Of a DNA stretch of 64,000 nucleotides, positions 32,167-63,949 are shown piece by piece; the first letter of the stretch is position 1, and every line of letters starts with the position of its first letter. The DNA is from Trichoplax adhaerens (Eukaryota > Animalia > Placozoa), in the NCBI RefSeq assembly GCF_000150275.1, contig NW_002060954.1:992001-1056000 (forward strand). Direction: 5' to 3'. The translations under genes were made by a program, and so were the position numbers. The notes beneath the pieces were generated by a model, which did no database searches, was not told the DNA's origin, and worked only from the letters and a program-made list of their open reading frames with translations.

Positions 32167-35100
32167 CTAGTTCTGGCTATTGCTGTTATTAAACCTTTCA
32201 AGCCTTCTTCGTCGACACATGGTAGCTTCGTCATCAAGATCAGCTGTCTCCTTATTCAAAGGCTTACTTGGGTTACCATCGTTATTATTATCTGCACCTT
32301 GGACAGAAGTATCCTCACTTGCCTCATTACCAGTAGCTGATGAGTTTCTATGTAATGAGAAATACAGTAGCATGGGGTTAAAAACCATCGTCACTTGTCA
32401 AATATTTGTATAAACAGTATATAAACGCTTACTTCGATATGTAGTTGTCAATACGCTCACTGACAGATTCTAGCATGCCTCTGATGAAATTTAAATCTTG
32501 ACGAATATCTTTTAAAGTCACCGGATCGCTATTATTGTTACCTACAAGGAAAATTTTTTACTTTGATTACTAATCATTCATGAAATAAGTCGAGCTAAAC
32601 AAATATCATTCTAGGCCAAGATCTGTACCAAGGAAATAGGAGGGCAAAGGTGGAGGGGGAGGAATCGGAAAAGGAATATTTCCTTGGGTCCCGGAAAAGA
32701 AAAATGGTGGCACCTGTTAAATGTATATAAATTTAAGAGTTTAAAAGGATGTAGCGAAAATTGTCGATTGTACGTGTGTATCAGTAACATGGACCATATC
32801 GTATTATGATTGGTTCTACCCGTATACATGCTAATGTTCATAATATAATAAGAAGATCATTTACATTTGCAGCGTTATTCCTATTATTAGTTGTATCAGC
32901 AGCCGCAGAGCCATCGACATTGTCAGTCCGTCCTTCTGATGGAGCTTGAGGAGCATTTGGACCCTGTCCCATGAAAGGTGGTAAAAAATTTGGCCACCGC
33001 GGTTGTTGATTGTTTCCATTTTGAGGATCTTGTTGATTTTGGTTAGCTAGAAACATACAAGAGCAAACACAATAAGGGATATATTCCAGATAATTTAATG
33101 TTAATAATGAACAAAACTGGGAGATTTAAGATTAGATAAAGTAACCCAACGTTAAATACTTGTACTAGAAAAGATACATTACCGTCGAAAAGAGCACCCC
33201 AAAATTGCGGAGGTGGCACATTAGGCGGAGCTGTTTGGACAATACAAGACCACGTCACAATTTGATATGTTTATACTCTTATTCAGGAAGTTATTCTAAC
33301 TCAAATGATCCCTAAAACGCTAACCTTGTTGATCTTGCTGATTTTGTTGCTGATTTTGTTGAACATTTTCTTCTGCCTGAGGCTGCTGTACCTCCGGCTG
33401 TTGCATAGTTGCCCGTAAAATATTCATACGACATGTTGGGCAAGTCTGCTGGCGCTGAAACCAGGATCTTAGACAACTTATGTGGAAAACATGGTTACAT
33501 GGTAATCTTTTACAGTCTGTCGTCATTTCTTCTCTACAGATTATACAAACATTATCCATATTTGCCAACTCCTCCGGAGTAACATCAGGACATCTAGATT
33601 GCGGCAAATTATACCATATAAATTAATGTTATGATCTACAATTAGCTATAAATTTCGTATAAATCAGAAAAATGAATATGACAAATAACGAAGACAAGTT
33701 TACGCCTACCGAGTCATAACGCTTGTAATAGCTCGTCGAGAAGAAATAATATCATGTAATGATTTCTTAAATGACCTGTCCATGATATAAATTCGAACTC
33801 TCAGTAACCGCATATTCAATCGCTAATGCGTAGACGAATGCTTGATGATAAAAAATTTAAGACTAACCTTAAGGCCAAGTACAAAGGCCTAATAGCAAAG
33901 AGTGGAAAAGCATGAATTTTTACCATAACAATAAAGAATAAAGAGTACAGTGCTGCGCGAATAAAATCTGGTAATGATAAAAAAATAAAAAATGTATTAA
34001 TGTAACAATCTACCAGCATTAGCGCCTCAGACTCTTCAGGCAATAACAAAAATTCTTGATTTCAGAAAATTGATCCCTATCTTACTTGTAACGAGTTCGG
34101 TGTATAAAATATATATTGCTTTATTTTCCCATGGACTTTCGTGTTGTAAATCAATAACATGTAACAAGTACTTCATAGCAATTGTGATAACCAAAGCTAG
34201 CAAAATGGCATACTGATAAAACCAGAGTAAAAATCAATCGCTGATTATATCTGTTCATTAATGTGTAAACCATTTAATATTATATGAAATTCCAACCTCA
34301 AATCCAAATACAATTTGAACCGATGCACCATTTTGTACTGTGGCATGATAAGCATTACGTATAAAATAAATATCTGTAGCTCCAAGACAAATCACGAGAG
34401 CTAAGAAAAGAGTTGCATCTTTAGTATAAAATTTAACATTGCATATTCTAAGTATGCTTCTTCTGCGAACGTATTATCGATATGAAAATGTGCTGTACAC
34501 TTCGTCCGTACAGAATAAATATTGCAAAAATAGTATGGAAGTTGAATATGATTTCCATAGATTAGCACTTACAAATCATTCTTAGGTGAAAAAGGGCAGA
34601 AATTGCAGGACTACGCTCCATCTGCAGAAGATAAGGAATGATTATACTTTACCCCAATAATAACAACATATAGTATTAGATTAGAATAATTCACTTTAAA
34701 TAAAAGTACAGTAAAATTTAATTTGTACCGTCATAACATAGCAGCACGAAGCAACTTACGTAATCAACGCGATCTTCACCCAACCAATGGAAAGTCTTAA
34801 CAAACAGTAGTAAGGTAAAGTTGGCTACAAAAAGTGGATTAAAGTCTTCTCGAAATACAGTGAATGCTAAACATGTTTCAGTAATGGCAAACCATGACCT
34901 TTCGTATAAATGCTAGAAAATGAAGTGTATCGAACATTAAGATAAAGTAAGGTTAGCAACTGACCTAGTACCATGAAGTGGAAGGACAGTATTATAATTA
35001 ATCATTATAACCCTAACTAGAAAATAAGACTGCATTAAAACAGTATAATACGTTTACCGTAGATAAAGTATAAGATATACTGTATTTTGAAGTATTATAC

Positions 35101-36959: not shown

Positions 36960-37330
36960 GAAATACTGTACAGTAGTTCTTGAATTCTTTTAGTGAATGT
37001 ACTCCTACTGTACACTGTACACTGTACAGTAGCTATCTTTAGCCTATCCATAGTCATACAGTAGTACAGTACGCTACTGTTTGTTTTAGTAATCCATGGC
37101 TATACTGTACCGTACAGTACAGTACATACTGTAGTCACTGGTAATACAGTACAGTACTTTGTTTAAATGACACACTGTACAGTACAGTACTGTGGTGAAG
37201 CCGTGAAGGTAACTTGTACTGTACAGTGTACAGTACGTGTACAGTATAGTGTACTGTACTGTACTGTACAGTGTAGTACTGTACTGTACTGTACAGTATA
37301 CTGTACTGTAAGCAATGTACTGTACAGTCA
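36960..37330. repeat. CAGTA/TACTG pentamer array in the HRD1/TMEM120 head-to-head promoter region
   Basis: Dense tacag/ctgta units, e.g. gtgtactgtactgtactgtacagtgtagtactgtactgtactgtacagtatactgtactgta. Confidence 0.9.
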
Positions 37331-37386
37331 ATCCGGCTTGAGCAAACACTGCCAAACAGGCGCAATCACAATCTGACCCGTGATTA

Positions 37387-37405
37387 CGTGGCACCTCCTG
37401 ATTGT
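37387..37405 (-). promoter_or_regulatory. ERSE-like element (ACAAT-N9-CCACG) upstream of HRD1
   Basis: Plus strand CGTGG cacctcctg ATTGT; one mismatch to ERSE CCAAT-N9-CCACG with exact 9-nt spacing; overlaps TACGTGGCA. Confidence 0.5.
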
Positions 37406-37733
37406 CCACTCGACGTATGGTCCGCTCAGTCATGACCTGCTCAATCATACCGTTACCCCATTGAGCAGTCACGGTTCAGTGCTTATTGACTAACTACACC
37501 ATGGATAGACCACTAGAAAAAAGACACCAATGCTCGACGATGACTTTACCAGGACAGTTGTACGCCAAGACGCTTGGCTGAGAGTCACCTTTCAAGTGCA
37601 CACGTGCACACTGCAATACTGTAGTACACAGTCTCTCAGTGCAACAGAGGTTACGATAGTAAATAAATAATAAGTCAACTTCGTGCACACACCGTGGCCA
37701 CCCAAAGTAGCACAACACGACACGGTAGGCCTG

Positions 37734-42263: not shown

Positions 42264-45200
42264 TTAGATTGCACAAGAGTCTTGATACAACTGCATGGCT
42301 TCTTCAGTGTGAGGATGAGAACTTCCTAATAAAGTGTCGAATAAATTAGCGGCAGTCCTAAATTGATATTCGGCACGCTGGTGCATATTTGTGCTTTGAT
42401 AAAAGCATGCTAAGTTAAATCGAGCAATGGCAGCATGAATATTCGGAGTGTCGCCGTAGTAATCCCCAAGGATAGACAATACAACGGAATAAATCGCTTC
42501 TGCACTATCTTTTTGTAAATCGGCATATGCTAAAGCTATATTATTGAGTATGCCTACCGAAGAAGGAGATTTAGACCTTAATACATAAATCCACTTAATC
42601 TTGATAATGAAAAGTAAGCATGTACAATACAGTACTATATAAACTACCGCTACAAAAATTCATAGTGCAACATCGTGATATTATATACGTTATATACAGT
42701 TAAAAAATTAATAGATAGTCTTCTATTCGCCATAATTCGGTTCGACTTAGTTCTTAATAGGACTATTACCTGCGGTCCGCGGATGAATAATGCCAAATTT
42801 TTTACAGGTTACTGCTAAATCTTCTATATAGAATGTCAAGGCTTCTCGATAGCTATTTTGTTTATAAGATAGCTGACCAAACTAGAATTTTATTAACAAA
42901 GAATCGAAAATAAATTTTATATTATCTGGTATCCGTGATTTCCATTTATTTTATTAACATAAAGAATGTAAAGATTTGTCAGAAAATATTTTATTACTGT
43001 CGGCAAATGCAGTATATAATATAAACGTTTAATACCAGGTGTTAGTACATACCACACTTAATATAGATGTCACATACGGATGATCAGAGCCTAAGAAATC
43101 CGTCGCTACTTCCAGGGCTCTGAAAATTACGCGTTTACTTTCCAGTAAATTTTTTTGAGTGCTTAAAACAGATCTACAATGGCCAAGAAATTGTTGATGG
43201 AATTACTACGTATATAATTAGTAAGTATACGTACGCATATTGCTTGCAATGACCTACCCAAATCCCAAAAGACCCCGTACTAGCAGTAATTTCTGTGTAG
43301 TAGATTTTATTTTTATTTGTCGTTGTATTGCATCTTTATAACATTGAATTGCCTCGTCTAGTCTCATTTCTTTTTCATACATAGAACCAAGAGCATACAT
43401 AGCCTACCGTATAATGAATATTTAGTACAGCATATTAAAATATATAGTCTTCCAAGAAATGCTTATACAAATATAGAGCAGTCATTACTTATAAATTCTA
43501 TTTGATTAAACTTTCCCTGTTTTATTCGAATTTTATTATAGGTGATACCAGTACTTGAATTTAAAACTAACCTCTATAACTTCTGGATGATTGCATCTAT
43601 AATTCCATTTAGTATGTGCGTGGTCATATATGACTGCTCCGTGTGAATTTAAATACCGCTTCTCAAGCTCTTGAGTTAGATTTTCATATGTTGCGCTAAT
43701 AATATTGTTACAATTAGTCCGAAAGCAAAAATTAATAACCTATCCATATGCACGAAGAAATTCTAATATGATAATATTCATTACCAACCGAGATTTACGT
43801 CTCTCATGATATGTTTCAGTCAGGATACGATCTTCAATCTGTGCAGTAAGTACTATCATTAGTAACAGCCACGTACGTCATTTGCTTAAGCTATCTCAAA
43901 GCTCACACTAAATAATAGAATGCTTTAATATTGCTAAAATTTTAATTTAAAACTTTTATTTTGCCTCATCTATTAGCTTCTGTCCTTCCATTTCTTGATC
44001 TTGCAGACTACCAGTCTGTAAATCACCCTCTGAATCATTTTCTGGATTATCAAATAATATTGATTCTTTAAATGGCAAGCTATCAATATCGCTATCTCCA
44101 TTAACTTTGATGGTGTTAAGTGAATGTTCTGAAAAAAGCTTGCCACTATTTTTTCGTAGTCGGTGACTTGCACTATGCATCTGACGGTTTAGAATTTCGT
44201 CATCGCTGAGTAATCCTTTATTATCTAGGAATACTTGATGCAAGATTCTTCTACGTCGACCAATCTTCGTTGATTTAGTTTTACCCAATGTTATATCTCC
44301 TAACGAATCCCCAGCTCGCGGTATATTTCTAAGCTTGACTCTTACAGATGCCATAGCCATAATGGGGCCTTGATTCAGGAATTTTCCGTCTACATTTTGA
44401 CCTTTTATGTTGTGATATGAACGTAAGTATCGATCTATCAGGTACATAATCTTCTACACACTTTTTTAACTATAAATTTCCTAAACATTAGTATACTACC
44501 TGATGATTCAAAATGTATAATTCTGACTCCGGTTCCGTAATTTCTAAAAGTTACAACCTCTTTATGCCATTTATTAGCGGACAAATCTGTAATCTGACCA
44601 CTATTGTATTCTCGCACGACTTTACGACCATGTCGTAATAATTTCACTTTGAATTCATAGTTATCGTTCTTATTATTACTCGATCCTCCCGAGTACCATT
44701 CAAAAGCCTGAGTTTAATATTGAATTACGTCAATGAGATAGCAATTGTAAATCCAATCTAAATCGTTTTATTACTTGAATATCTGGCGATTTATCCCAAA
44801 ATTCAGCAGGAAAATAATCTGTTAGCTGGATTTCTTGAAATTTCCTGCAATATGTATTGCTCGAAACGAATATCAGCGCTGTTGATTAAAGTGAAATTAT
44901 GTAATAAGTTTAGGGTAATATTGAAAATTAAAAACAAAAGCATTAATGTCAGTAAACATGTCTAAATGTTGACAATATTGTGTAGATTATTAACCATTTG
45001 TAATTGATTTCGGTTAGTACCGTAACCTCAGCATTGCCTATTCGATAAGCTTATAATCGTGTTATAGCTCTTTTTAAGTTAGACGATTATAGTTATGTCT
45101 CTAATATAATGCATTTGATTATTTTGTCATCAATTTTGATTCAGTAGTCTCAATACTGCCTATTTTAACATGTTTGTAGTTGTGTTCTATCTATCCTTAC

Positions 45201-48200
45201 AGTTTCAAGATATGATCATGACCATATTCTAGACATGATATATTTAGCTTTAATTCAGTTTTTCAGTAGTCTTATGCTTATAATGTTATAAATATCTTTT
45301 ACCTCGATCTTTTCCTTTAGTTCCATAAAAAACTTTCCAATTACCTCCCATTTTCCAAAACATTCTATTATCCAACTATAAAATGATAAATTTAATTATG
45401 TAAATGGTAATGATAAACAATGTGACTGCACTTTTTTTTAAGTTTCATATTGATTTTCATGTGAAGTTAACANNNNNNNNNNNNNNNNNNNNNNNNNNNN
45501 NNNNNNNNNNNNNNNNNNNNNNTAATTATTATAAGAAAATGTACGCTTATAATTTATTATGTATTAGGTGCTCTAGTTAACTAAATATTGCAGTAATTTT
45601 TATTTATAAAATATAAAGAGTTCAAGTATAAATTATACTAATTTCAAATGAGTTAGAATCTAGAAATACTCACATTACTCAATTGCTGATGATCATCTTG
45701 AGGAGTTAAGTACTGTATTGTTGATTTTTTCTTATTACTATGAAATAAAGCAAACGCACATAACGGCTGCTCAAATAGTGTCATGGAGAATTTACCATTA
45801 ACGATAGATATGGGCAAGTTAATATAATTGGCTGTATTGCCAAGCTCTAATTCTCCATCATTTTCTTTCATGACTTGTTGTACCTATCGATAAATGTCAC
45901 CATCATTACTAGATGAAATAGAATAATATCACTATTGTTGCTATTTATATCCCTTACGTCCTTGGTAGCATTCTTTCCCTGTAATATGCAGCATTGTACG
46001 GATGACTCAATATAATGTAGCTTTAGGATATAACTGCCATTTTCTATAGGAAACTAGAAGTTAAATATAACGTAACATATGAAAATTAATATTGGCATAC
46101 CGGTATAACATACTGTATAGATAATTAATTATCATTTAATTGAAAATCGAGAAAGTAGAAATCTAAACAATGTGAATGTTTCATTTTTAAATCTATTAGA
46201 AATGGTAGTGACAGCTCCTGTCTATTCAACGAAATCTTTCTTTATATTTAACTAACATAATTTAAAATACATACTTCGTATTTAACTACTTTTTCATCGC
46301 CAGCAACATTTGAAGTTCGGTAGGTGCTATAAAGCAAGCCATCATCAGTATTCATAATAGTTTGATGCAGAACTGGATTCCGGTAAACTCCTTTTAGGTT
46401 AGTTCCTTGCAGTCCTATTAAATTTTAAGACATATAGTGAAAAATTAGTAATTAACTTAGCTGATCAAATAATATTTCTTAAATAATAATGAATATTGCT
46501 GATTTAATAAATTTAAGATTAGCTATACAGAAGTTATTTAAAGTTACGTATAGTATGCATCATATCTTAAAAAATAGCATTGATGTACTGTAGTAATCAC
46601 ATAAAAGAGATTATTTCATTTCGCGACTGTAGTTAGAATTAATGCCTCATCTATTTATTTCAGTTCATATAATAATTGGACGATAAAGTACCTTTCTGCG
46701 ATGATAGTAAGAAATTATTCTCACTTATATATACCACTCCTTGCGAATTTTCATAGGATGGTCCAGCACAATTAACAGCAACACCAACGTAGTTAGGTTG
46801 TCGAATTAGCTGCATTGGAGAACCATTTAGTTCTACCTTAATTTCAGAGCCTTCGACACCTGTTATATGGATATTTTTTAATTATTAAAAATATGTATAA
46901 AAGGTATAAATGTGCTCATCAGAGAACTGACTGTAAAATATTAGCTTATAATATTATTTATGATAAGTTCAAAAGTATTATCGTATACTACCATTAAATT
47001 ACAACAATAGCACAATTATTCTTTCTATCTTTGTGATTTACTTGATTTACCAATTAATTATTAATCAATATGATCATGGTTATCCATAATTTTCTAAATG
47101 TTGTAATTAGTTAAAAGAACATAATACTGTAGCTACATCAAAACCATTAAGTTAACGAAATGTGGATTTTAATGATTGAATAATCAATCATTTTACAATT
47201 ACCTGGTATATCGCCAATGCTATCAATTGCAAATACACGTATTAAATGAAGGCCAAGAATTCGTTGCCGTGAAGGCCACAATTTGGAAAATGTAAACTTG
47301 TTTTCACTTTCCTGATTTAATTCTTGTCTCTTAATACGAAATACTTCTTTCTCGTCGACAGTGATACAGAGTGTACTAGACTGTGAAAGCCAACCAGAAA
47401 TTTTTTCATTATCAATATCGACTTGGCTATGTAAAAATGATCGATCAGCTATAGCTAAACTGGCATGTTGGTTATGATCAGTTTGCTTCATGCCATGAGA
47501 TAACCGACTATCGCTAATATTAGATAAGATAGCATAACGACAAGGTCCAGACGGGCCGGAAACGTAAATGGATGCGTTGGATAATGAAAATTTCCATACG
47601 TTGGAATTATTTCCTTTGCTACCACTACCTTTAAAATAGCCAGCTTTTATGTCGAGATAAAGAATATTATTAGCTTATGCATATATGGTGTTAGTAGAAA
47701 TCAGTTAGTCCTTGACTCTACGAACGCAATTTTATACACTCTGTGATACACATATTAAAGTGTAGATAAGTACCGTATATTTAATTTGATGCTCTCGCAC
47801 TTAAAATCTGTTAATTTTTTTAGAGTAGCTCTAATTGCGCTTTGTGAACATGAATAGAAAATCATTAGATCTTACGCGTACCTCTAACCTTCCGTTTTTC
47901 ACTAGCTTCCGTCGAGACGGTCAATAAATACAAAGCTGAAATAGTTCGATCTTCATTGCCATAACTATGAGAGCATAAAACAATAAAAATGCAATGTTTT
48001 ATTGATGTCGCTAGCTTTAAAATCATCGTCTTTCTTTCTCCATCGATGGCTTGTGTATGATAAGTGAAATTTCTGAAAACGCTACTGTCTTTTATATCTT
48101 GATATCGGTCTGGTCTATTATGATAAAGACAATATGTACTTTCTTTAGGCCCTGATACTCTAAGGCGGCTATTTGGTCCTTTCGTTGAAAATTTCCATTG

Positions 48201-51200
48201 ACTATCGCCATATAATTTCTCTCCATGGAAATTATTGCCGTCTGAACCAAATCTATGCAATGAAAATGTTTTCATATCTGTTAAGTAGAGCGATATCTTT
48301 ACGTGATCCAGAATTACTAATTACAATACGCATTCAAGTCACTAACGGTGCTTCAGTAGTTTTACATCGAAATAATATTTGAATCTATTTGATATATGGG
48401 ATTTTTAATATCAGTATTATACAAAAACTACAAGATTAAAGGTGAAATTTAAATTAATACCCAGTATTGTTCACTAAAATTACATGATAATAAGAAGGAT
48501 AATGTTCTCCGATTTATAAGTTTCTAGTTGTATTACGTCGTACATTTTCAAATAGTTAATGATGAAATCTAGATTTTTAATTAAAGGGTAATATAGTATG
48601 ATAAAATTTCTTGAGAACAAGAAGGATAATTTTCTCTGGTCTATAATTATTATTATTTTTATTGAATATTTTTAAATAATTACTAGTGTTTATTGATTTG
48701 ATTTTATCTCGAAGTAATATCGAATTTCACATGATATTTCAGTTTTTAAGTATTAACAATAACCCTGAATAGCATACATGATTTATTAATATATTAAACA
48801 GTTATGGCCAAAGTAGAGTACAGTATAGTGGGCATAAAATTTGCTTATGTAGGTGTACGTAGGATGCCTTTCCACTTTTACTTGAAGGGAAATGGGGTAG
48901 TTTAAATTAAGTACCTTACCTGAGAAGATAAAGCGCACCAAATGCCGATAACTTTGCTTTTGCTCGGCCTTCACATGGTGCACTACATAATAAAATGGCT
49001 GCACCTCCATCTGATTCATCTACCTTGATGGGTAAATCACATATTAATTCGTTATCTTTAGGGATGCAAACTAAGCCACATCGTAGGCTCGTTTGATGAG
49101 CATGATTCGATAAGATAGTAACAAAATTAGCTCCACATCCGCTATTTAGGATCAGATTGCCTTTAACATCAGGATGAACATCTAATAGTGCAATTAAAGT
49201 CGATAGATTTCACTTATTGAGTATATTGCAATTAAAATAGCTTTAATTTCAATAAAGTTGCCTTAATTAATGATATAAAATTATGTATATGATAATTTTA
49301 AAAAATAATTCAAACTCTAGATATTTAAAATCTAGTATTAAAAAGTTCCAGAAAATTTCTTTTATATATCATATATCAGTTTTTTACAATTGTCAACTAG
49401 TAAGACTAATGATAGTATGATATAAATACAGTAAATCGAAAAATGATGGGAATTTTAGATTATAGTACTTCAATTCTAGGATGGATTATGGTACTTTGTC
49501 TATGATCCTACGAAAGACTATACTGGAGCTCTATAATTATAATCCAATCTCTAATGAAAGGTCATAATCGTAACTGCTTTAAGAGAAAATTAAATTCGCT
49601 GTAATTTAACCCTTTTAAATTATGGGATTATAAAGTTATTATGGAATTTATTTACTGCTATTATAAGTTCAGAATATTTTTGATACTATTAGATATTAGT
49701 ATAGTTAATAGTTATACATATGCAATCACCAAAGGTCGGTTGATGCTTTTTTCCTAACATCTGATGGATTATAGAGAGGCGACAATGATTTGAGTCGAAG
49801 CCAGATTGCAACATTAACAACGCGGCTGCAGTTTCACGATTGTATGTTGAAGAAACGATTAGAAGCGAAGTAGACCCTCCATATTGTCCATTGACATTAA
49901 AATCTAATTGAATTGAGCAACATAAAGGCCATACGACATGGGCACAATTGTTGATATCATCTGATACACCTATAATCAAATAAAGATTTAATTTGTTAGC
50001 GAAATTAATTACAGGATTGCTGTCCTAAGCTATTTCCGGTGATTTTTAATTAAGATATCTCATACAGTTTTAACGATATAACTATGCGGTACCCTGGCAT
50101 TTTACCGCAATATAACAGTGTTAAAAACTAAGTTGATCGACTTTAATCTTTATTTAGGCATAATGGAAGCCGTTAAATATTTTAATTCAATCAAATATTA
50201 ATTAAATAAACTCTGATGACAAGATAATGCCCGTGGAGGAATAGCAACGGTTATTCATCATTTCGATTTCGGCTTTCAGTTCCGTTTCTAGTACAGTAAT
50301 TCACTATCAGAATAGGAACATCATAATTTCTCTACACTTTATATGTTGCAACGAAAGGAAAGGTACTCTAGTATCGAGCTATCCACAGGTTAGCATGTTA
50401 AATATTAGATTTTTTCACATTTAATTATCAATAATGTTCTTCATTTTGGTATTAATCAACTTCATTTGTATCCATGATCCAATTGAAATTGTTAAGACTA
50501 ATTAACTTATATCATTGATCTAGCAGAAATTTAAAGTTTTGATACGATACCATTCGAAATATACGACAATAATTGTAATGATATTGTGATAGTGCTTAGA
50601 TATCAGAAGCAGTTTCTACACATTCCCTTTTTGTATATGTATATGTACAAGTTATAACACTCCAGTCAACATCAAATTGCAAGCATTCTGGATCTATAAG
50701 CTACCAGTATCCTATAATATAAGAATTTTTTTCTAATACTATGTCATGTTTTCCTTACGATCTATATTTTCCTTCAAGTGATTGTGACACAGTAACTTTA
50801 CATCTTTCCTCCGGTTATTATAAAAGAATAAGCTGTTCGAATATTTGCATAAAGTCCAGCATATATTTAGGGATTGATCTAACTTGTAGGTGATTTAATT
50901 ACGGTAGCTTTTTTGGCAGAATACTGAGATTGGTAACGACAGCTATCAGAAAATTCACATGACTTACGTACATGCTATAAAATGAGGGTATAAATGAAGT
51001 TATAGGAATGAAGAAATTATAGAATATTTGCTAGATTAATTTGTTATAAAGTTTCTCCGTTAGCATTAAGCAAGTTGTTAATAATGTATAAATGCGAATG
51101 ATTTATCAAGAATTTTCACGAGAAAAATGCGATGTGACGGTCTTTTTTTGAGATACATTATCGTTAGCCTATGATATCGTTAACAAGAGCGATAATAACT

Positions 51201-51701
51201 GTAATATGATCTAGCACTAACGAACTTGATTGCGATAGAAACTAAATCATATATTTTACCTTGGTAATACATATCAGTTTTTTTGAGTGATGCAAGGCTG
51301 CCAGAATAATCTAGAGATTGATTTTTTTCTACTTGTTCGCTATCTTGAATTACATTATTTATGACAATGATATTCTCATCTGATAGTGATGGAACTATGT
51401 CTTCACTTTGATCATTGTTTCCATTTTCTTGAACATTATCTTCTTGGACTACTTGGGAAAGTTCTTTCTCTTCGTTTACCTTATCCTCTTCACCTCCATT
51501 GACTAGTGTTACTCTTTTTACATCGCCATTGTCATTATTATCTTCTACGCTTTCTAGGATAATTTGTACTTTTGGATAACTGTCACTTTGTCCAATATTT
51601 GACTCTGATTGGATTGTATTGCTGTCTTTTTCATCAATATCGTCAACTTGATTCTCGCTATGATGATCAGATACTGGTATATTTTGAATATCGGTAGCCA
51701 T
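42264..51701 (-). CDS. Uncharacterised large multidomain protein: acidic N-terminus, 3 novel repeats, Ig-like module, malectin-like domain, FBA domain, TPR repeats
   Basis: Phase-compatible exons from MATDIQ (51701) to ...QDSCAI-TAA (42264). Malectin-like VAVNCAGPSYENSQGVVY / IMNTDDGLLYSTYR / KYEFPIENGSYILKLHYIE. FBA-like WKMGGNWKV / FVSSNTYCRKFQEIQL / PDIQAFEWY / WHKEVVTFRNYGTGVRIIHFES. TPRs with LGSDHPYV, GIIHPRTAGILNNIA, LGSSHPHT. An assembly gap lies in one intron, the junction near 43850-44010 is ambiguous, and the attachment of exon 1 is inferred from phase only. Confidence 0.75.
45473..45522. other. Assembly gap (50 N)
   Basis: Run of N in the intron between the malectin and FBA exons. 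Confidence 1.
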
Positions 51702-57300: not shown

Positions 57301-60300
57301 TTTAATATATTAGCAGCAGATTAAAGTAGCGTGATCACCGAGTTTGATACTAAAAAAACTAAAATGTATCGTCAAGTATCAAATATTAAAGCGATAATTT
57401 TGTACCTGCACCGTTGCCAGGCTATCACCGTAGTCATCGCTATTAACCATAGCGAATTTCTCGTTGATCCAAGATTCCTCTTCTTCGACATCGAACATAA
57501 ATTGCTGATAACCATAGGATTGCTCTAATTTTTCAGTCCTGTTTACGATTTAGAAACAGTCATACGTATGTTATAATTTATTTTAATTGACTTTTTTAAA
57601 ATACATATCTAGAGTTGGCACATAAAAATTAAAATCAGCTTCTTTCACCTTCTTGCAACGGCATCTTTCAATTCCATCCATAGATTGCTGACGCTTTCGG
57701 AACGATTTTTGATATCAGCTTGTGGATAACTCTCATCGTTTAGTAATTTATCAGCAGTTTCTTGAATGTTCTAATAATGATATCGAAATATTATGGTCCC
57801 GATGTAAAATAATCAAATTATTATTGAATTCTTACCTTTATGCGATTGTCATGGCCGGATAACTCTGTCTGAAATCTCTGATGGTTTTTACGCAAATTTT
57901 GGACACTTGTAAGATCTTTTCCATAGTCTTCCGAGCCCATGAGTAGCTTCTTTTCACTGTAATAATGTGATGATAAATATACATGGTATAAATGAAATCA
58001 TACAAGTACGCGCAGTTGTATTACCTTATCCATGTCTCTTCATCTTCGATATCACGATAGAACTGAAATAGTATGTATGACTTTTGTAGCTTGTCGTGGC
58101 GAACTGCGCAAAGACCTTTTACTCTATTTGAAAGATTTACGGGTTTATTTATTTGTTTGACAATAAGATACTCAGGTTACTGCTAGTTACTTGTTAAATT
58201 TATCAGCGACATCTTTGATCTGTTCCGCGATAGTATCCTTGCCATAATGATCACCAGCAATTAGGTCTTGTCCTTGTTTTTTTAGATCCTCAACACGTTC
58301 CTATTTCAATAAACGTTAAGAGTTAAACAATCGTAGAGGTAGTAAGACCATTAGTTACGTTCGTACCGCATGGACTTCAACGTCAGCTAGGAGTACTTGA
58401 TGCTTTTTTAGAATGTTGGAGACGGTTACTAAATCTTTACCGTAATCTTCACCAGTCAGTAAAACTTCGATCTATGCGTAAAATAAATCCATGTTTAAAA
58501 TCAATCTTACATAAAACGGTTTACATCATTGCTCAAATTTGCACCGTAACTATACGCATAAATCATAAGGCACCTTCCATCTGACATAAATTCATTTCGT
58601 TTAAATACTTATCTCTTTGATATAGTAATAGGTGCAAGTATATAGTTTACCTGTACAAACCAAAAGTCTAAGTCCTTCACGGTATTTGTAAATTGTAAAA
58701 GGACGCTAGCTTCCTTCAGTCTTGTGTTTTTTTCCGACATTTGTTCCTTTAATTTCAGCAATTGATCTTCCAAATCTTTAATACGCTTCTTAACATCCTC
58801 TTCGTTACCAGAGCAAGCGTCATTGGCCATAAGATCTGGTAAAAATAAATATTGCTGATTGTCACGTTTACATATACTGCAATCATTACATATTATTCAC
58901 TGCCATGTCCGACAGATTTATAACGTATAGGAAAGATGACCAACCATTTCCCATATCAATAACTGCTTTAATACGATCTTCATTTGCAGCTACTTCTGCT
59001 TCCAAAGCTTGTTGCTTCTGCAATTTACTCTGTATAGATTTTAAAACAAATGCTGAAATTTAGTAATTGTTAACTCGGTTAAAATTTTGCACTTTTTGCT
59101 AGCGCAAAATTATTAGCATTATACGATTTCTGACAGGGTTACAGATAATTTACTTGAACGAAAGCTGGATCTTGATAGGAGTCGTCTTGTAGTGATTTCA
59201 ATTTGTCATTTAGCCATCCTTCCATTTCGTCTGCATCGAGATTGAATTGATTTAGGGTTTTTGTTTGTCCAAGTTTAGAGCGATGAGATTCCAACATGTC
59301 CTTTAGTTTATTCCATCTACATGTCAACATTATAGTTTAGACCAAACAAAAGATAGGGATCGCGGAATTATTCCATTTATGAATACCTGTCAAGAATTTC
59401 GTCGCGTTTACTAGCAATAGACTCGGCATCATAATGACCTTCTTCAGTTAGCAGATCAGACATATCCCTTAAGGCATTAATTTTTTCTTCCTGTATACGT
59501 TTAAATTAGCATCGGACATTTAGACAAAAACGAATACTAAATATTTATAAACTTCAGTAGTTACATGGATATAATATTACCTGTAAGGCAAAGGCTTTGT
59601 CAAGATTCTCACGCTTTTTGCTACCTGTGGTATCTTCTTGAGCTGCAATGTCGTATGTAGAGAAAAAATTTTCTTTAACAGACATCCAACTTTCAGCTTG
59701 TTGAGCATCCCTGTGGAACATCTGCATACGCAGGAAAACAAATAAAATGACTGTTATGCATTGACGCAAAGTACATCTATAAATTCATAATCAATATTTT
59801 TTGTGTCGCTGACCTGTAGGCCAAGACATTGATCAAGCCGCACTTTTCTAAACTCCCAATTGCTGTAGTTGAAGAGAAATAAGCAAAATAAATTAATGAT
59901 AAAGATTTAAAGAAAAATTAAAAACTTATAGAAGTGCGTACTTTTCTAACTGCTGCATATCCACTTGAATTGAAGATAATTTCTCACTTATATCTTCACT
60001 TGCATAGTGTTCCTTGTCAATTAAACTTTGACCAAAATTTTTTAAATTTTGCAAACTTTCGTCACGAGAATCAATCTCGGTTCGATGTTCCTGAACAAAT
60101 GGTAGCATAAAATTAGTTTTTCGATTTCATGAGAACTGGTTCGCATAGCTACGACATTTGTGAAGGTTTAGAATGTAACACCAAGTGTGCCTAATTATGC
60201 CTCTAGTTAATTGTATTGTGAGTACCAGGTGCACTTCAAGAAGGGTTTCAGCTCCAGGAACATCATGAGCTAATTCATTGGATGAAACCAATGAATTCAT

Positions 60301-63300
60301 ACCATTAATCCAAGAAGATATATCCCTAATTATCAAATCATAAAACTATAGTTAATATAAAACTACTATATGGGAGAAAATTAATAATCACTAGAACCTG
60401 TGATCATTTAAAAATTGTTGATAGTCCTGAGAGTCGGTTAGTTTGGCTTTTCGTGATGCTGCCTAAATACATACAGTAAAGTAGATATTTTAATTTTCTT
60501 ATTGTCACTGGACCGCCTTAAATTATGTAGGTTTACCTGTTTCACGAGGTTATCCCAAGCTTCAGCGATTTCAGATTGCTTAGCGCAAATTCTTTCCGCA
60601 GAATCTGGGTGGATTTCCGCTAATTTTGTAGCTTCAACATCAAGTCCTTGAATCTAATTTATTAGTTTTCAGCAAGGTTTGTAAGTCAGAGTAGTTTAAG
60701 ATAAAATTAAAGTAAGTTGCGGGGCATAGCGAACCTTATCTTCTAAGACCGCAATATCTCGTTCAATTCCATCATGCTTGCGCATCAGTGCTTGAACGCT
60801 AGCTAGATCTCGTCCGACTTCATCAGAGGACATTACGGCAACTTTCTCACTTATATAGGACGTCGTCTCATCAGCATCCCTTGGAAGAAATTTTAAAGAT
60901 TTGAGAATTATTATCATCACCACAAGGACTCTGAGTTAGGGCTTTAAGTCAGCTATAATACTACCTAAAGAACTTGTGAATATCGTGAGAACCACTCAGG
61001 TCAGCTCTGCGTTTTTCCGTCAATTTTTTGAGATTGTCCCAATTTTCTAACAAATTCTAAATACCCACAGAGAATAAATTATTAATCAATAGATGACATT
61101 TTATGGCAGTCATAGTGAGTCAAACTAACCAATGTTTGTTGCCGAATTGCTTCAGCATCAGAATGACCTTCGTTCTGTAATTTTTGCGAAACTTCATTAA
61201 CTTCATTGACACGTGTTTCATTTGCCTCAAGATCCTAATAAGGAAACAGCAGATATTCCAGTATGATTAAAGAACCCAAATAATTTTAGATATGGTACAT
61301 AGGTTTGAGATTTGAAAAGGTACTATTCTTACTTTAAGAAAATCGTCGAACTTTTGTTTTAAAGCTTCAACATGATCTAGATCATTTCCTAATTCAGCTG
61401 AAGTATTGGCAGCTTTCTGTTTGTACGTTTGGTTAATGTTATACATACTTTGATCAACATATCATGTATGATAAAATAGTATATTTTAAGTGTTGTGATA
61501 TTTACTTTCTCTTCGATCCATGTTTCAAGTTCGCTCATTTCACGGCTTAGTCCATGGCGTTTATAAGAGTCTACTAACTTCTGTCGTCTTTCTCTTGCTT
61601 TCTTGAGCAGTGCATTATACCTTTTGTTAATGAAATAAAATTAGATATATTTAAAGAAGGGTGATTTAGGCGATAGTAATCATTACAACCTTAATCTACT
61701 GCACTATTGCACACCCTACCTATCATCTAGAGCTTGTTGGCGACTTGCAACATTTTCTAACTCAACTGGACCCATCATAGACATGCGAGAGACCGATAAT
61801 CTCGATACCGATCTTGGCCGTACCGTTGGACTTAGCGATGAAACAGGACTTAGAGGCGTTTCACTCGAATTGTCGGATACCTGCATCAAGATGGAAGCGG
61901 GAACAAAACCGACCTTGTCATCTTTAACAACCTTCCACCATTTCTAGAAGTATTAAAAATGATAACCAAAAAGTGAATAACTTAAGAGATCATATATACT
62001 ATAATTGCATTATATGGGACTAACGGGATTGGCAGCATGCACAACGGATACTACGTCGTCTTTTTGTAACGATAGTTCATGTGAACTATCTGGGTCGAAG
62101 TCTTCTAAAGCTTTCATTTCCGTACCAGGAGGGACTTCCGACGCAGATGGTTTAATATCCTAAAGCGATCATATAAGGGTAATTTAGGAGGAATTACTGA
62201 CAAGTATAGCAAACTGTATATAAACAAAATTCATTTAAAACTGTCCAACAACACTTCTTCATCGACTATTCAAGATTAAAAGGATAGATAACCTTGCATT
62301 TACTGCTTGCAGTTCTTAAGTTGTCTATCGTTTCCCCGTACGCTTCAATTTCCGATAATACCGCGTCGTGTTTTCTTAATAGTGACTATTTAAGAAGATT
62401 TACCTTAAGCATCGGCGCAACTAAAGCAAATTATCATAGTGAAGTCTAACCTGAGCACTATCTTCGTCTTTGCCGTAATCAGTACTTGATGTTAGTTGAT
62501 CTTTATCTTTAATCCATTGTTCTGCCTCGCTACTATCAGCAAAGTACTGGTGAGTTCGCAACGAGTCATCCAATTCACTTTTTCTTCCAATACATTTGTC
62601 CTTTTAAAATTTATTCAGAATTTTAATAACAAATAAATTTTATCCTTCTATAATTTTTATTTTAGGTGTTATGTTAACCTTAAGCAAATTCCATGCGTCT
62701 TTCAGTTTATTTATTCCTTCATTTATATCGTTCGTTGCATAATGTTCTGGTTAAAAGTAAAACATTTATTTTTAATATGCGTAAACTAAATATTGCACGA
62801 TTAGTTAAGTTAACTACTTTAATAGAAATTTTAATATCGTCTGTCCCTTTATAAAAAGCATATCGTCTATAGGAATTTTAGAAAATGCTAAGAGATAATA
62901 TATACATTTATGTTACTTTACGATCATTTCAGAATTCAATTTCTTACCATCATCAATAAGCTTTTGTCCATCTGCACATACAGCATCTATTTTTGTTTCG
63001 TGGTTATCAATCTCGGTCTAAGTAAATATTGAGATACTTTAATGGCGATAACTAGTTCATTAATTCACATTGACATCATTTGTGGTACGTACTTGCATTG
63101 CTTGATGCTTCTTTATTAAACTCTGTACCGTTAGGAGATCTCGGCCATGGCTACCTGAAGAAGCAATAGCCTCTTTTTCTCGAATCCAGGTTTCTTCATC
63201 TTCTACGTCTCTCAAAAATTGAAACAGCAGTAGAGAATCATTAAGTTTTGCTTTTCGTTCTGAGACTGGATCCTGTAAGTTCATACAAAATTTAAAGTTA

Positions 63301-63949
63301 GAGTTCATATCATATAATTGTGCATGAAAATACGAGAGTCAGGGGTGAAAGAGAATATATATTATAATACCTCAAGTCCTGAAAATCTCAAGGCAACTTG
63401 TTGTTGCTTATCTTTAATACTATCAGCATGGAAATGTTCTTCGGAGATGAAAGCATCTGCTTGTTCTGTAATTGCTTTCAAGGCTTCAGTATGAGCTGCT
63501 ATATCGGCCTCTAATAGGGTATGTTTCTTTATCAAATTTTGTACGCTGACCAGATCCTATATTATTATTAAATACAATAGATAAATTATAACACATTCTG
63601 ATAAGATTATGATATTATCATATTATTTACTCTGCCAATGTCTTCAGAATATAATTGTAACTCCACTTCTGCTATCCAACGTTCCATATCATCAACTTCT
63701 CTATTGAATAGTAATTCTCGATGGGCATCTCTTAATTTTGAGCCTTTATCCGATGATAAGCGAACAAGTTTATCCCATAATCCATTGATTTCATCTAGTT
63801 TATCTTCAATTTTATCAGTTTTTGGGTGTTCAGCTTCGATTAAAGCTTTTCCGGAATTATTAACATTGTCTATTCGTGTTCTATTTGCAGAAACTTCTGC
63901 TTCAAAGGCTTGATGTTTACGAAGTTTGCCTTGCATGTTGGATAAGTCC
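54336..63949 (-). CDS. SPTAN1: Spectrin alpha chain, 3' portion (spectrin repeats, SH3, EF-hands); gene continues beyond the window
   Basis: Many short exons colinear with alpha-II spectrin: [11 protein letters not shown]3 ([16 protein letters not shown]), [65 protein letters not shown]-hands [26 protein letters not shown]; ends [16 protein letters not shown]. Confidence 0.98.

Follow-up and report, generated by a model that had tools for sequence, protein, structure and literature searches.

A gene that places a malectin-like domain and an FBA domain ahead of a tail of TPRs raises the question of whether it is a mosaic without counterpart or a member of a family that has been met elsewhere. 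The gene lies on the minus strand (ATG at 51701, stop at 42264) of a 64,000-nucleotide (nt) stretch of the genome of the placozoan Trichoplax adhaerens (contig NW_002060954.1, positions 992,001 to 1,056,000), which we call the window and which has a G+C content of ~32%. A first-pass annotation, made from the letters alone, did not recognise the architecture and proposed a cytosolic dual lectin in which TPRs replace the F-box. Homology searches gave a different answer. Judged by its sequence, the gene is homologous along its length to a conserved, uncharacterised NLR-like (STAND) family of ~1960 amino acids (aa), and is a core-less variant of that family, not a unique architecture.

A conserved family and a copy without its core

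When the FBA exon was run with HMMER against the full library, 21 matches were returned, and the window gene's own protein was not among them. At rank 19 stood LOC109471895 of Branchiostoma belcheri (isoform X3, XP_019626894.1; 1964 aa), for which Pfam reports FBA, DUF4062, NACHT and TPR_NPHP3/TPR_12/TPR_10. All homology searches on the spliced 19-exon model (listed below) were run exon by exon. BLAST against LOC109471895 was collinear throughout, at 31-50% identity: exons 2-5 correspond to residues 111-529, exons 6-9 to residues 534-703, exons 10-12 to residues 761-884, exon L2 to residues 1711-1738 and exons T1-T4 to residues 1742-1960. The identical order was obtained with tblastn of LOC109471895 on the window.

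A word search with residues 100-910 of LOC109471895 yielded eight further proteins of 1904-2054 aa, each with FBA, DUF4062, NACHT and TPRs. The nine members of the family, all uncharacterised, come from Branchiostoma (including B. floridae/lanceolatum, one of them auto-named ‘TEP1’), Acanthaster planci, Patiria miniata, Anneissia japonica, Mercenaria mercenaria and Saccostrea echinata. They share one layout: a variable N-terminus, three to four beta-rich repeats, a beta-sandwich, a malectin-like domain, FBA, DUF4062, NACHT, a helical region and NPHP3/KLC-type TPRs. An F-box was found in none of the nine. With a collinear family in amphioxus, echinoderms and bivalves, the gene can no longer be regarded as an orphan. 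The family profile also matched the structure of a TEP1 fragment (11gz, E 3.6e-19).

A profile hidden Markov model (HMM) of the nine aligned proteins (alignment A2) was run on 3579 open reading frame (ORF) pieces from both strands of the window. It matched this gene only, on the minus strand and in order, first over family positions 105-978 and then over positions 1696-1950; exons 7-10 and 13 were picked up at relaxed thresholds. For positions 978-1696 there was no match at E<=1 in any ORF piece of either strand, and tblastn agreed. The ~720 family positions absent from the whole 64-kb window comprise DUF4062, NACHT, the helical region and the first TPRs, and neither the family HMM nor tblastn found a NACHT or NB-ARC P-loop NTPase at the locus. 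The expected site of this core, 44400-43570, is continuous and without N, which makes the absence a property of the present assembly. What remains of the gene has kept most of the residues that are invariant in the family: 90% in the repeats, 73% in repeat 4 plus sandwich, 87% in the malectin-like domain, 76% in FBA, 75% in the linker and 76% in the TPRs.

DUF4062 has been reported to be a TIR-like NADase adjoining NACHT in human TEP1, NWD1, NWD2 and NPHP3 (bioRxiv 10.64898/2026.05.01.722283). A survey of placozoans described 42 NACHT/NB-ARC genes with TPR or WD40 repeats, with no mention of FBA or malectin (PMC6321704). In the open literature that could be searched, no description of the architecture was found for FBA with NACHT or for placozoa with malectin, and a word search with the exon-13 ORF for further placozoan copies gave no match.

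Gene model

The minus strand was read and its stop-to-stop frames were listed; the exon model was drawn from these, and a script checked the junction codons and the frame of each exon. The model has 19 exons and runs from the ATG to the stop over 4002 nt, that is 1333 codons plus stop. All 18 introns (67-1290 nt) are GT-AG with consistent phases, and internal stops number zero, which bears out the single phase-compatible frame proposed at first. The order of domains is an acidic N-terminus, related beta-rich repeats, a beta-sandwich, a malectin-like domain, FBA, a linker and ~5 KLC/NPHP3-type TPRs. In the list below, residues are those of LOC109471895 and positions are those of the family HMM.

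51260-51701, minus strand: exon 1, acidic N-terminus, with the ATG at 51701, 147 whole codons and a phase 1 donor
49730-49969, minus strand: exon 2, beta-rich repeat 1 (residues 111-161, 49% identity, E 1e-15; positions 105-173, 47.9 bits)
48920-49181, minus strand: exon 3, beta-rich repeat 2 (residues 181-259, E 1e-6; positions 183-259, 27.1 bits)
47882-48252, minus strand: exon 4, beta-rich repeat 3, with an alternative donor at 47876 (residues 269-379, 38% identity, E 4e-18; family HMM 77.3 bits)
47203-47643, minus strand: exon 5, repeat 4 and a compact beta-sandwich (residues 386-529, E 5e-23; family HMM 96.3 bits)
46859-46692, 46414-46275, 46053-45958 and 45883-45674, minus strand: exons 6-9, malectin-like domain, by hhalign and the family HMM (positions 523-575, 594-630, 634-661 and 675-725)
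45473-45522, no strand: assembly gap, a run of N in intron 9, read from the sequence
45375-45303, 44878-44775, 44707-44500 and 44401-44330, minus strand: FBA domain, exons 10-12 and the first 24 codons of exon 13, by Pfam and BLAST (exons 10-12 align with residues 761-784, 786-817 and 820-884; exon 10 is at positions 778-794)
44012-44329, minus strand: post-FBA linker, the remainder of exon 13 (positions 909-978, 16.2 bits)
43789-43852, minus strand: putative bridging exon L1, 64 nt, phase 1 in and phase 2 out, placed by splice-site and phase logic only
43572-43695, minus strand: exon L2, helical stretch preceding the retained TPRs (positions 1696-1738, 37.3 bits; residues 1711-1738)
43403-43258, 43173-43053, 42881-42770 and 42553-42264 (stop included), minus strand: exons T1-T4, ~5 TPRs, by Pfam, BLAST and HMM (residues 1742-1960, 38-49% identity, E down to 1e-20; positions 1739-1950)

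Exon 1 is indeed acidic, as had been noted (34 D+E against 9 K+R in 147 aa), and showed no homology to the relatives, whose N-termini vary too. The linker is homologous to the family as far as ~44169; beyond this point it is unique and acidic. Signal-like or transmembrane-like hydrophobic stretches were absent from every segment, as they are from the relatives, and the F-box families gave no match at E<=1 in any exon. The earlier statement that signal peptide, transmembrane helix and F-box are all missing holds on these checks, and a cytosolic location remains the prediction.

FBA domain and the assembly gap

The identification of an FBA-like domain was confirmed by Pfam: FBA (PF04300) scored 41.9 bits on the exon at 44707-44501, against a cut-off of 32.4. 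The FBA of the family also matched FBXO2 structures (E 3e-29). Genome-wide scans covered the 105,631,681-base assembly of 1414 contigs, in which the window lies on contig C1403. In a six-frame scan FBA was found solely at this locus (46.5 bits), and the animal therefore seems to be without an F-box-plus-FBA (FBXO2-type) gene, the count being a lower bound.

The relatives carry an FBA loop of the form SSGKDDK.W.GH[YF]G....S.A.VRV, in which W891 of the family is aligned with the Trp of YWK in the FBXO2 structure 1umi. In the literature on the Fbs1 structure, this type of Trp loop is the glycan (chitobiose) contact. With the acceptor at 44401 the loop of the window gene has exactly the family length; the acceptor at 44434 would add 11 residues that are found in no relative. 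In this loop K886, D887, K889, W891 (replaced by K), G893 and H894 are all changed, and G896 alone is kept of seven invariants. Elsewhere in the domain 19 of the 25 invariant residues are retained. By these alignments the FBA appears to keep its fold-defining residues and to have lost the canonical chitobiose-binding loop, and because of that loss FBXO2-style binding of N-glycan cores is unlikely. The replacement of the sugar-binding loop had been noticed before and stands, with six of seven invariants gone including the Trp; the loop sequence quoted for it, DRYLRSYHNIK..., does not, as it contains probable intron sequence (acceptor 44434).

The N run falls in the intron between exons 9 and 10, whose flanks are both phase 0 (exon 9 donor AAT|GTGAGT at 45674; exon 10 acceptor TTTTATAG| before 45375). 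Exon 9 is aligned to family position ~725 and then has a 15-residue tail, and exon 10 is aligned from ~774. Some 30-35 family positions (~740-773), among them the conserved GWSSNLLxN start of FBA, are without counterpart beside the gap; these positions are either deleted or encoded on a small exon within the unread stretch. The two sides of the gap belong together, since the malectin-like domain directly precedes FBA in every relative.

The closest matches of the FBA exon included proteins with otherwise bacterial-type domains. Some of these are giants with DUF4347, bacterial cadherin-like domains and RTX repeats, and others have type-IX secretion sorting tails and 2-5 FBA domains. With such proteins among its closest matches, FBA is not restricted to eukaryotes.

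Malectin-like domain

Animal malectin (PF11721) is a lectin of the endoplasmic reticulum (ER) lumen that binds Glc2-N-glycans. Run exon by exon on exons 6-9, the Pfam Malectin profile gave no match at E<=1; in the genome scan it matched only the canonical gene on another contig (C1393; 87.6 and 36.9 bits). This canonical, ER-type malectin gene lies at C1393:89873-91974 on the minus strand and has a signal-peptide-like start. Malectin_like (PF12819) matched nothing in the genome and was silent on its control too, and is thus uninformative. No match was obtained with phmmer for exon 6 against PDB sequences, and BLASTP against the genome's own malectin gave a 25-residue match for exon 6 and none for exons 8 and 9.

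Support for the domain came from profile-profile comparison. An alignment of canonical animal malectin (A1) was built from matches to the genome's own malectin exon and covers the first ~95 profile positions. The exons were collinear with it in hhalign: exon 6 at columns 49-77 (E 2e-5), exon 7 at columns 95-106 (E 0.06) and exon 8 at columns 117-132 (E 0.006). Exon 6 (46857-46693) scored 32.5, whereas the best of 100 shuffles reached 16.4 and the best of the other exons 19.6. The score of exon 8 was reached by 1 of 100 shuffles. Exon 7 on its own is not significant, because 11 of 100 shuffles reached its score. The unrelated short exon L1, used as a control, reached E 0.0016, and exon-level hhalign E-values near 1e-3 are therefore untrustworthy. 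At the level of the family, A1 matched A2 with a probability of 92.4% (E 5e-7) over 83 columns, corresponding to A2 544-647. The ESM Atlas neighbours of LOC109471895 residues 530-750 were all Malectin clusters (0.86), which we treat as a lead only.

We accept a distant, sub-Pfam relationship to malectin over the N-terminal two thirds of the domain, as indicated by the profile comparison. The malectin domain of the first-pass annotation is upheld to this extent by the comparison of profiles and was not recovered by Pfam.

Beta-rich repeats and sandwich

The repeats (R1-R4) had been described as related, and their mutual matches at the level of family profiles agree: E 1.5e-6 for R1 and R2, 9.5e-6 for R2 and R3, and 1.6e-7 for R3 and R4. 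R1 and R2, and likewise R2 and R3, are related through their C-terminal halves; R3 and R4 are related through their N-terminal halves.

Exons 4 and 5 were modelled with AlphaFold2 from a 10-row alignment. Residues 70-140 of exon 5, the one confident part, were predicted to be all-beta, with predicted local distance difference test (pLDDT) values of 77-94. With Foldseek against the PDB neither model had a significant match; the best leads for exon 4 were weak and FN3/Ig-like. Of the Ig-like module suggested earlier, the compact all-beta sandwich is reproduced in the model and a significant structural match is not.

TPR tail

Pfam on single exons detected TPR_1 (E 8e-6), TPR_10 (1.6e-5 and 8.7e-5) and TPR_12 (8e-5), each slightly under the per-protein cut-off. 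The TPR segment of the family matched KLC1 structures (E 8e-24). The KLC/NPHP3 type first assigned to these repeats is correct on this evidence, and their number is raised from about four to about five. The TPR exons retain 28 of 37 family-invariant residues (76%).

At E<=0.001 the last TPR exon, T4, matches nothing else in its own genome, yet it matches LOC109471895 with E 1e-20, and the TPRs therefore belong to the lineage of this gene. They look constrained, and by homology they would be the orthologous tail of the same ancestral gene. This bears on the idea that the TPRs take the place of an F-box, which we discard: their orthologous counterpart is the final 255 positions of a NACHT family in which nine of nine members have no F-box. 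As the gene is without family positions ~978-1696, its TPRs represent the end of an NLR-like protein rather than an F-box substitute.

Explanations for the core-less gene

As a whole, the explanation that we favour, with moderate confidence, is a core-less NLR-like derivative acting as a cytosolic, non-enzymatic scaffold. An internal deletion in this lineage would have removed the DUF4062-NACHT core, leaving a product of ~1333 aa that may serve as a cytosolic, non-enzymatic binding scaffold. Its ligand could be held by the well-conserved beta-repeats and the malectin-like domain, while the TPR tail might contact protein partners, possibly other STAND proteins. The role would be that of a sensor-only adaptor or a decoy for STAND-type signalling, and not that of a ubiquitin-ligase receptor. 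We favour loss of the core here over its gain in Bilateria, because the TPRs that remain belong to a type found behind NACHT in NPHP3-type proteins and in each of the nine relatives. The context suggested by the relatives, with their FBA-DUF4062-NACHT-TPR build and no F-box, is of the NLR/STAND type (NPHP3/TEP1/NWD kind) and not SCF-mediated ER-associated degradation (ERAD).

A number of observations weigh against this explanation. The data fit both loss of the core in this lineage and its gain in Bilateria, and what is proposed about ligand and partners is conjecture. The support for the malectin-like domain is profile-profile similarity over the N-terminal 83 columns only, and the AlphaFold2 models of exons 4 and 5, both all-beta, had pLDDT values of 60 and 62, which is low confidence. 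The gene model is predicted from DNA, and its weak point is the join between the FBA and TPR parts. The join requires a phase-1 donor (44012 or 44027), then L1, then the phase-2 acceptor at 43695. L1 had no homology to the relatives with the family HMM at relaxed thresholds. Several phase-compatible paths are possible between the two parts, so that the existence of one path is weak evidence. Left unspliced, the exon 13 frame stops at 43958-43956, overlapped by an AATAAA at 43956-43961 on the minus strand; the overlap fits a short lectin-only isoform, and such hexamers are common in A+T-rich DNA. Finally, translation of a separate TPR-only product could begin at an in-frame ATG at 43859, which stands 7 nt ahead of the L1 acceptor.

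These features of the join are what would be expected if the locus gave two products: a lectin-type protein of ~1066 aa ending at 43958-43956, made either by a gene of its own or as a short isoform, and a TPR-only protein of ~290 aa starting at the ATG 43859. Against this, the stop and the ATG are only ~97 nt apart, with no space for a promoter, and the two parts form one polypeptide in all nine relatives. The 43852 acceptor is preceded by a good branch-point-like TACTAAT, family homology restarts exactly at the acceptor 43695, and the TPR exons are as well conserved as the remainder of the gene. We regard two products as unlikely, if well worth keeping in mind, and a single predicted gene joining the FBA part and the TPRs as probable.

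The reading from which the analysis set out, a cytosolic dual lectin with TPRs instead of an F-box that works in glycoprotein quality control (ERAD) or senses exposed N-glycans on its own, is right in that the FBA and malectin-like domains are real and that F-box and signal peptide are missing, and it could also point to an HRD1-like gene ~8 kb off. It becomes improbable once the TPRs are seen to be the C-terminal array of a NACHT protein in the relatives, and with six of seven invariants lost from the FBA loop that holds the FBXO2-aligned Trp; the tie to HRD1 is one of proximity alone. Its part in glycoprotein quality control is not sustained, given that the relatives are NACHT proteins without an F-box. 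A little less probable again is a decaying relic, that is an NLR-like gene crippled by the internal deletion and on its way to a pseudogene. The whole catalytic and switch core is gone, the loop invariants are replaced, part of the FBA start is without counterpart, and only the use of an exon without support avoids an in-frame stop. Yet GT-AG sites and phases are intact for all 19 exons, none of which is interrupted by a frameshift or stop as modelled, and the 73-90% of family-invariant residues kept per segment would be unexpected after long neutral decay at 31-50% identity. That the DUF4062-NACHT exons are present in the organism and were collapsed or lost in the assembly is very unlikely: this is a draft with N gaps, one of them within the gene, but the stretch expected to hold the core has no N, the sole gap lies elsewhere, and no orphan core of the family type was found, the two other DUF4062 loci of the genome belonging to other genes.

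Beyond the core-less scaffold that we favour, a bolder proposal concerns the family as a whole. Its members might be undescribed intracellular pattern-recognition receptors whose lectin head senses glycans exposed to the cytosol, with the placozoan copy as a sensor-only derivative; we hold this to be doubtful at present and offer it tentatively. In such receptors the malectin-like domain and an FBA with intact Trp loop would drive NACHT oligomerisation and the TIR-like NADase effector, and the placozoan copy could, through its TPR tail, either relay to other STAND proteins of this genome or serve as a decoy for them.

Relation to known systems

The closest system is the LOC109471895-like family itself. 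The beta-repeats, sandwich, malectin-like domain, FBA, linker and last ~5 TPRs are the same and collinear, at 31-50% identity per exon, and neither the window gene nor its relatives have an F-box or signal peptide. The window gene differs in being without positions ~978-1696 and in the replacement of six of the seven FBA loop invariants. With NPHP3, TEP1 and NWD1-2 the connection runs through the TPRs, which are of the NPHP3/KLC kind, and through the DUF4062-NACHT core that the relatives share with them. The window gene has neither DUF4062 nor NACHT, whereas NPHP3 and TEP1 have no lectin-type N-terminus, and a separate NPHP3-like gene exists elsewhere in this genome.

FBA domains are mainly known as the glycan readers of SCF ubiquitin ligases. 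The FBA beta-sandwich is common to the window gene and FBXO2/FBXO6/FBXO44 (Fbs), as seen with Pfam and the FBXO2 structures. Unlike FBXO2/6/17/27/44, the window gene has no N-terminal F-box, and the Tyr-Trp-Lys / GW.G loop is not conserved. The likeness to animal malectin is a distant one of profiles, in the N-terminal two thirds, with the motifs AVNCxG...Y and Y-T-R...Y-L-L; in contrast to animal malectin, the segment goes undetected by Pfam and carries neither signal peptide nor membrane anchor.

The family ties FBA and malectin-like domains to STAND proteins with a TIR-like NADase, a pairing undiscussed in the searchable open literature, and places FBA on an NPHP3/TEP1-type core in relatives from three bilaterian phyla. 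It suggests a testable hypothesis, namely cytosolic glycan sensing coupled to NAD+ depletion. A core-less copy in an early-branching animal would be a natural dissection of head and tail from the switch, useful in the search for the ligand of the head and the contacts of the TPR tail. For annotation, the locus is to be described as a conserved gene and not as an orphan mosaic.

Other loci and neighbouring genes

The two other DUF4062 loci of the genome lie on contigs C1406 and C1414. The first, at C1406:1944800-1954799 on the plus strand, is an NPHP3-like gene. The ATG of its first coding exon stands directly at DUF4062, which is 40-46% identical to that of the amphioxus family and is followed by P-loop and TPR_NPHP3/TPR_10 exons. 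Gene fission, with the core of the window gene encoded elsewhere, was considered and rejected, the C1406 locus being a complete NPHP3-like gene with TPRs of its own. The second locus, C1414:8857223-8857576, is a six-frame match with one TGA and two TAA, which may be due to introns or to a broken gene. Open frames of great length (917-1587 aa) that give NACHT-type and TPR matches cluster at C1414:6.35-6.39 Mb and occur on other contigs; they resemble an expansion of STAND genes with few introns.

Within the window, an HRD1/synoviolin-like gene was found on the minus strand at 33320-34049, with a RING-H2 finger (zf-RING_2, E 4e-12) and the SYVN1 N-terminal region (E 1.4e-6). It lies ~8 kb past the 3' end of the gene studied here, and position is the only link between the two, in line with the initial caution that their proximity may be coincidence. 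A multi-exon spectrin-repeat gene occupies 58609-63936 on the minus strand (Spectrin, E 3e-21 and 5e-13). No functional link of the studied gene to either neighbour was seen. At 37086-37472 on the minus strand, a segment with a G+C of 0.39 and open frames of repeated TVQYS-like units is probably a low-complexity tandem repeat.

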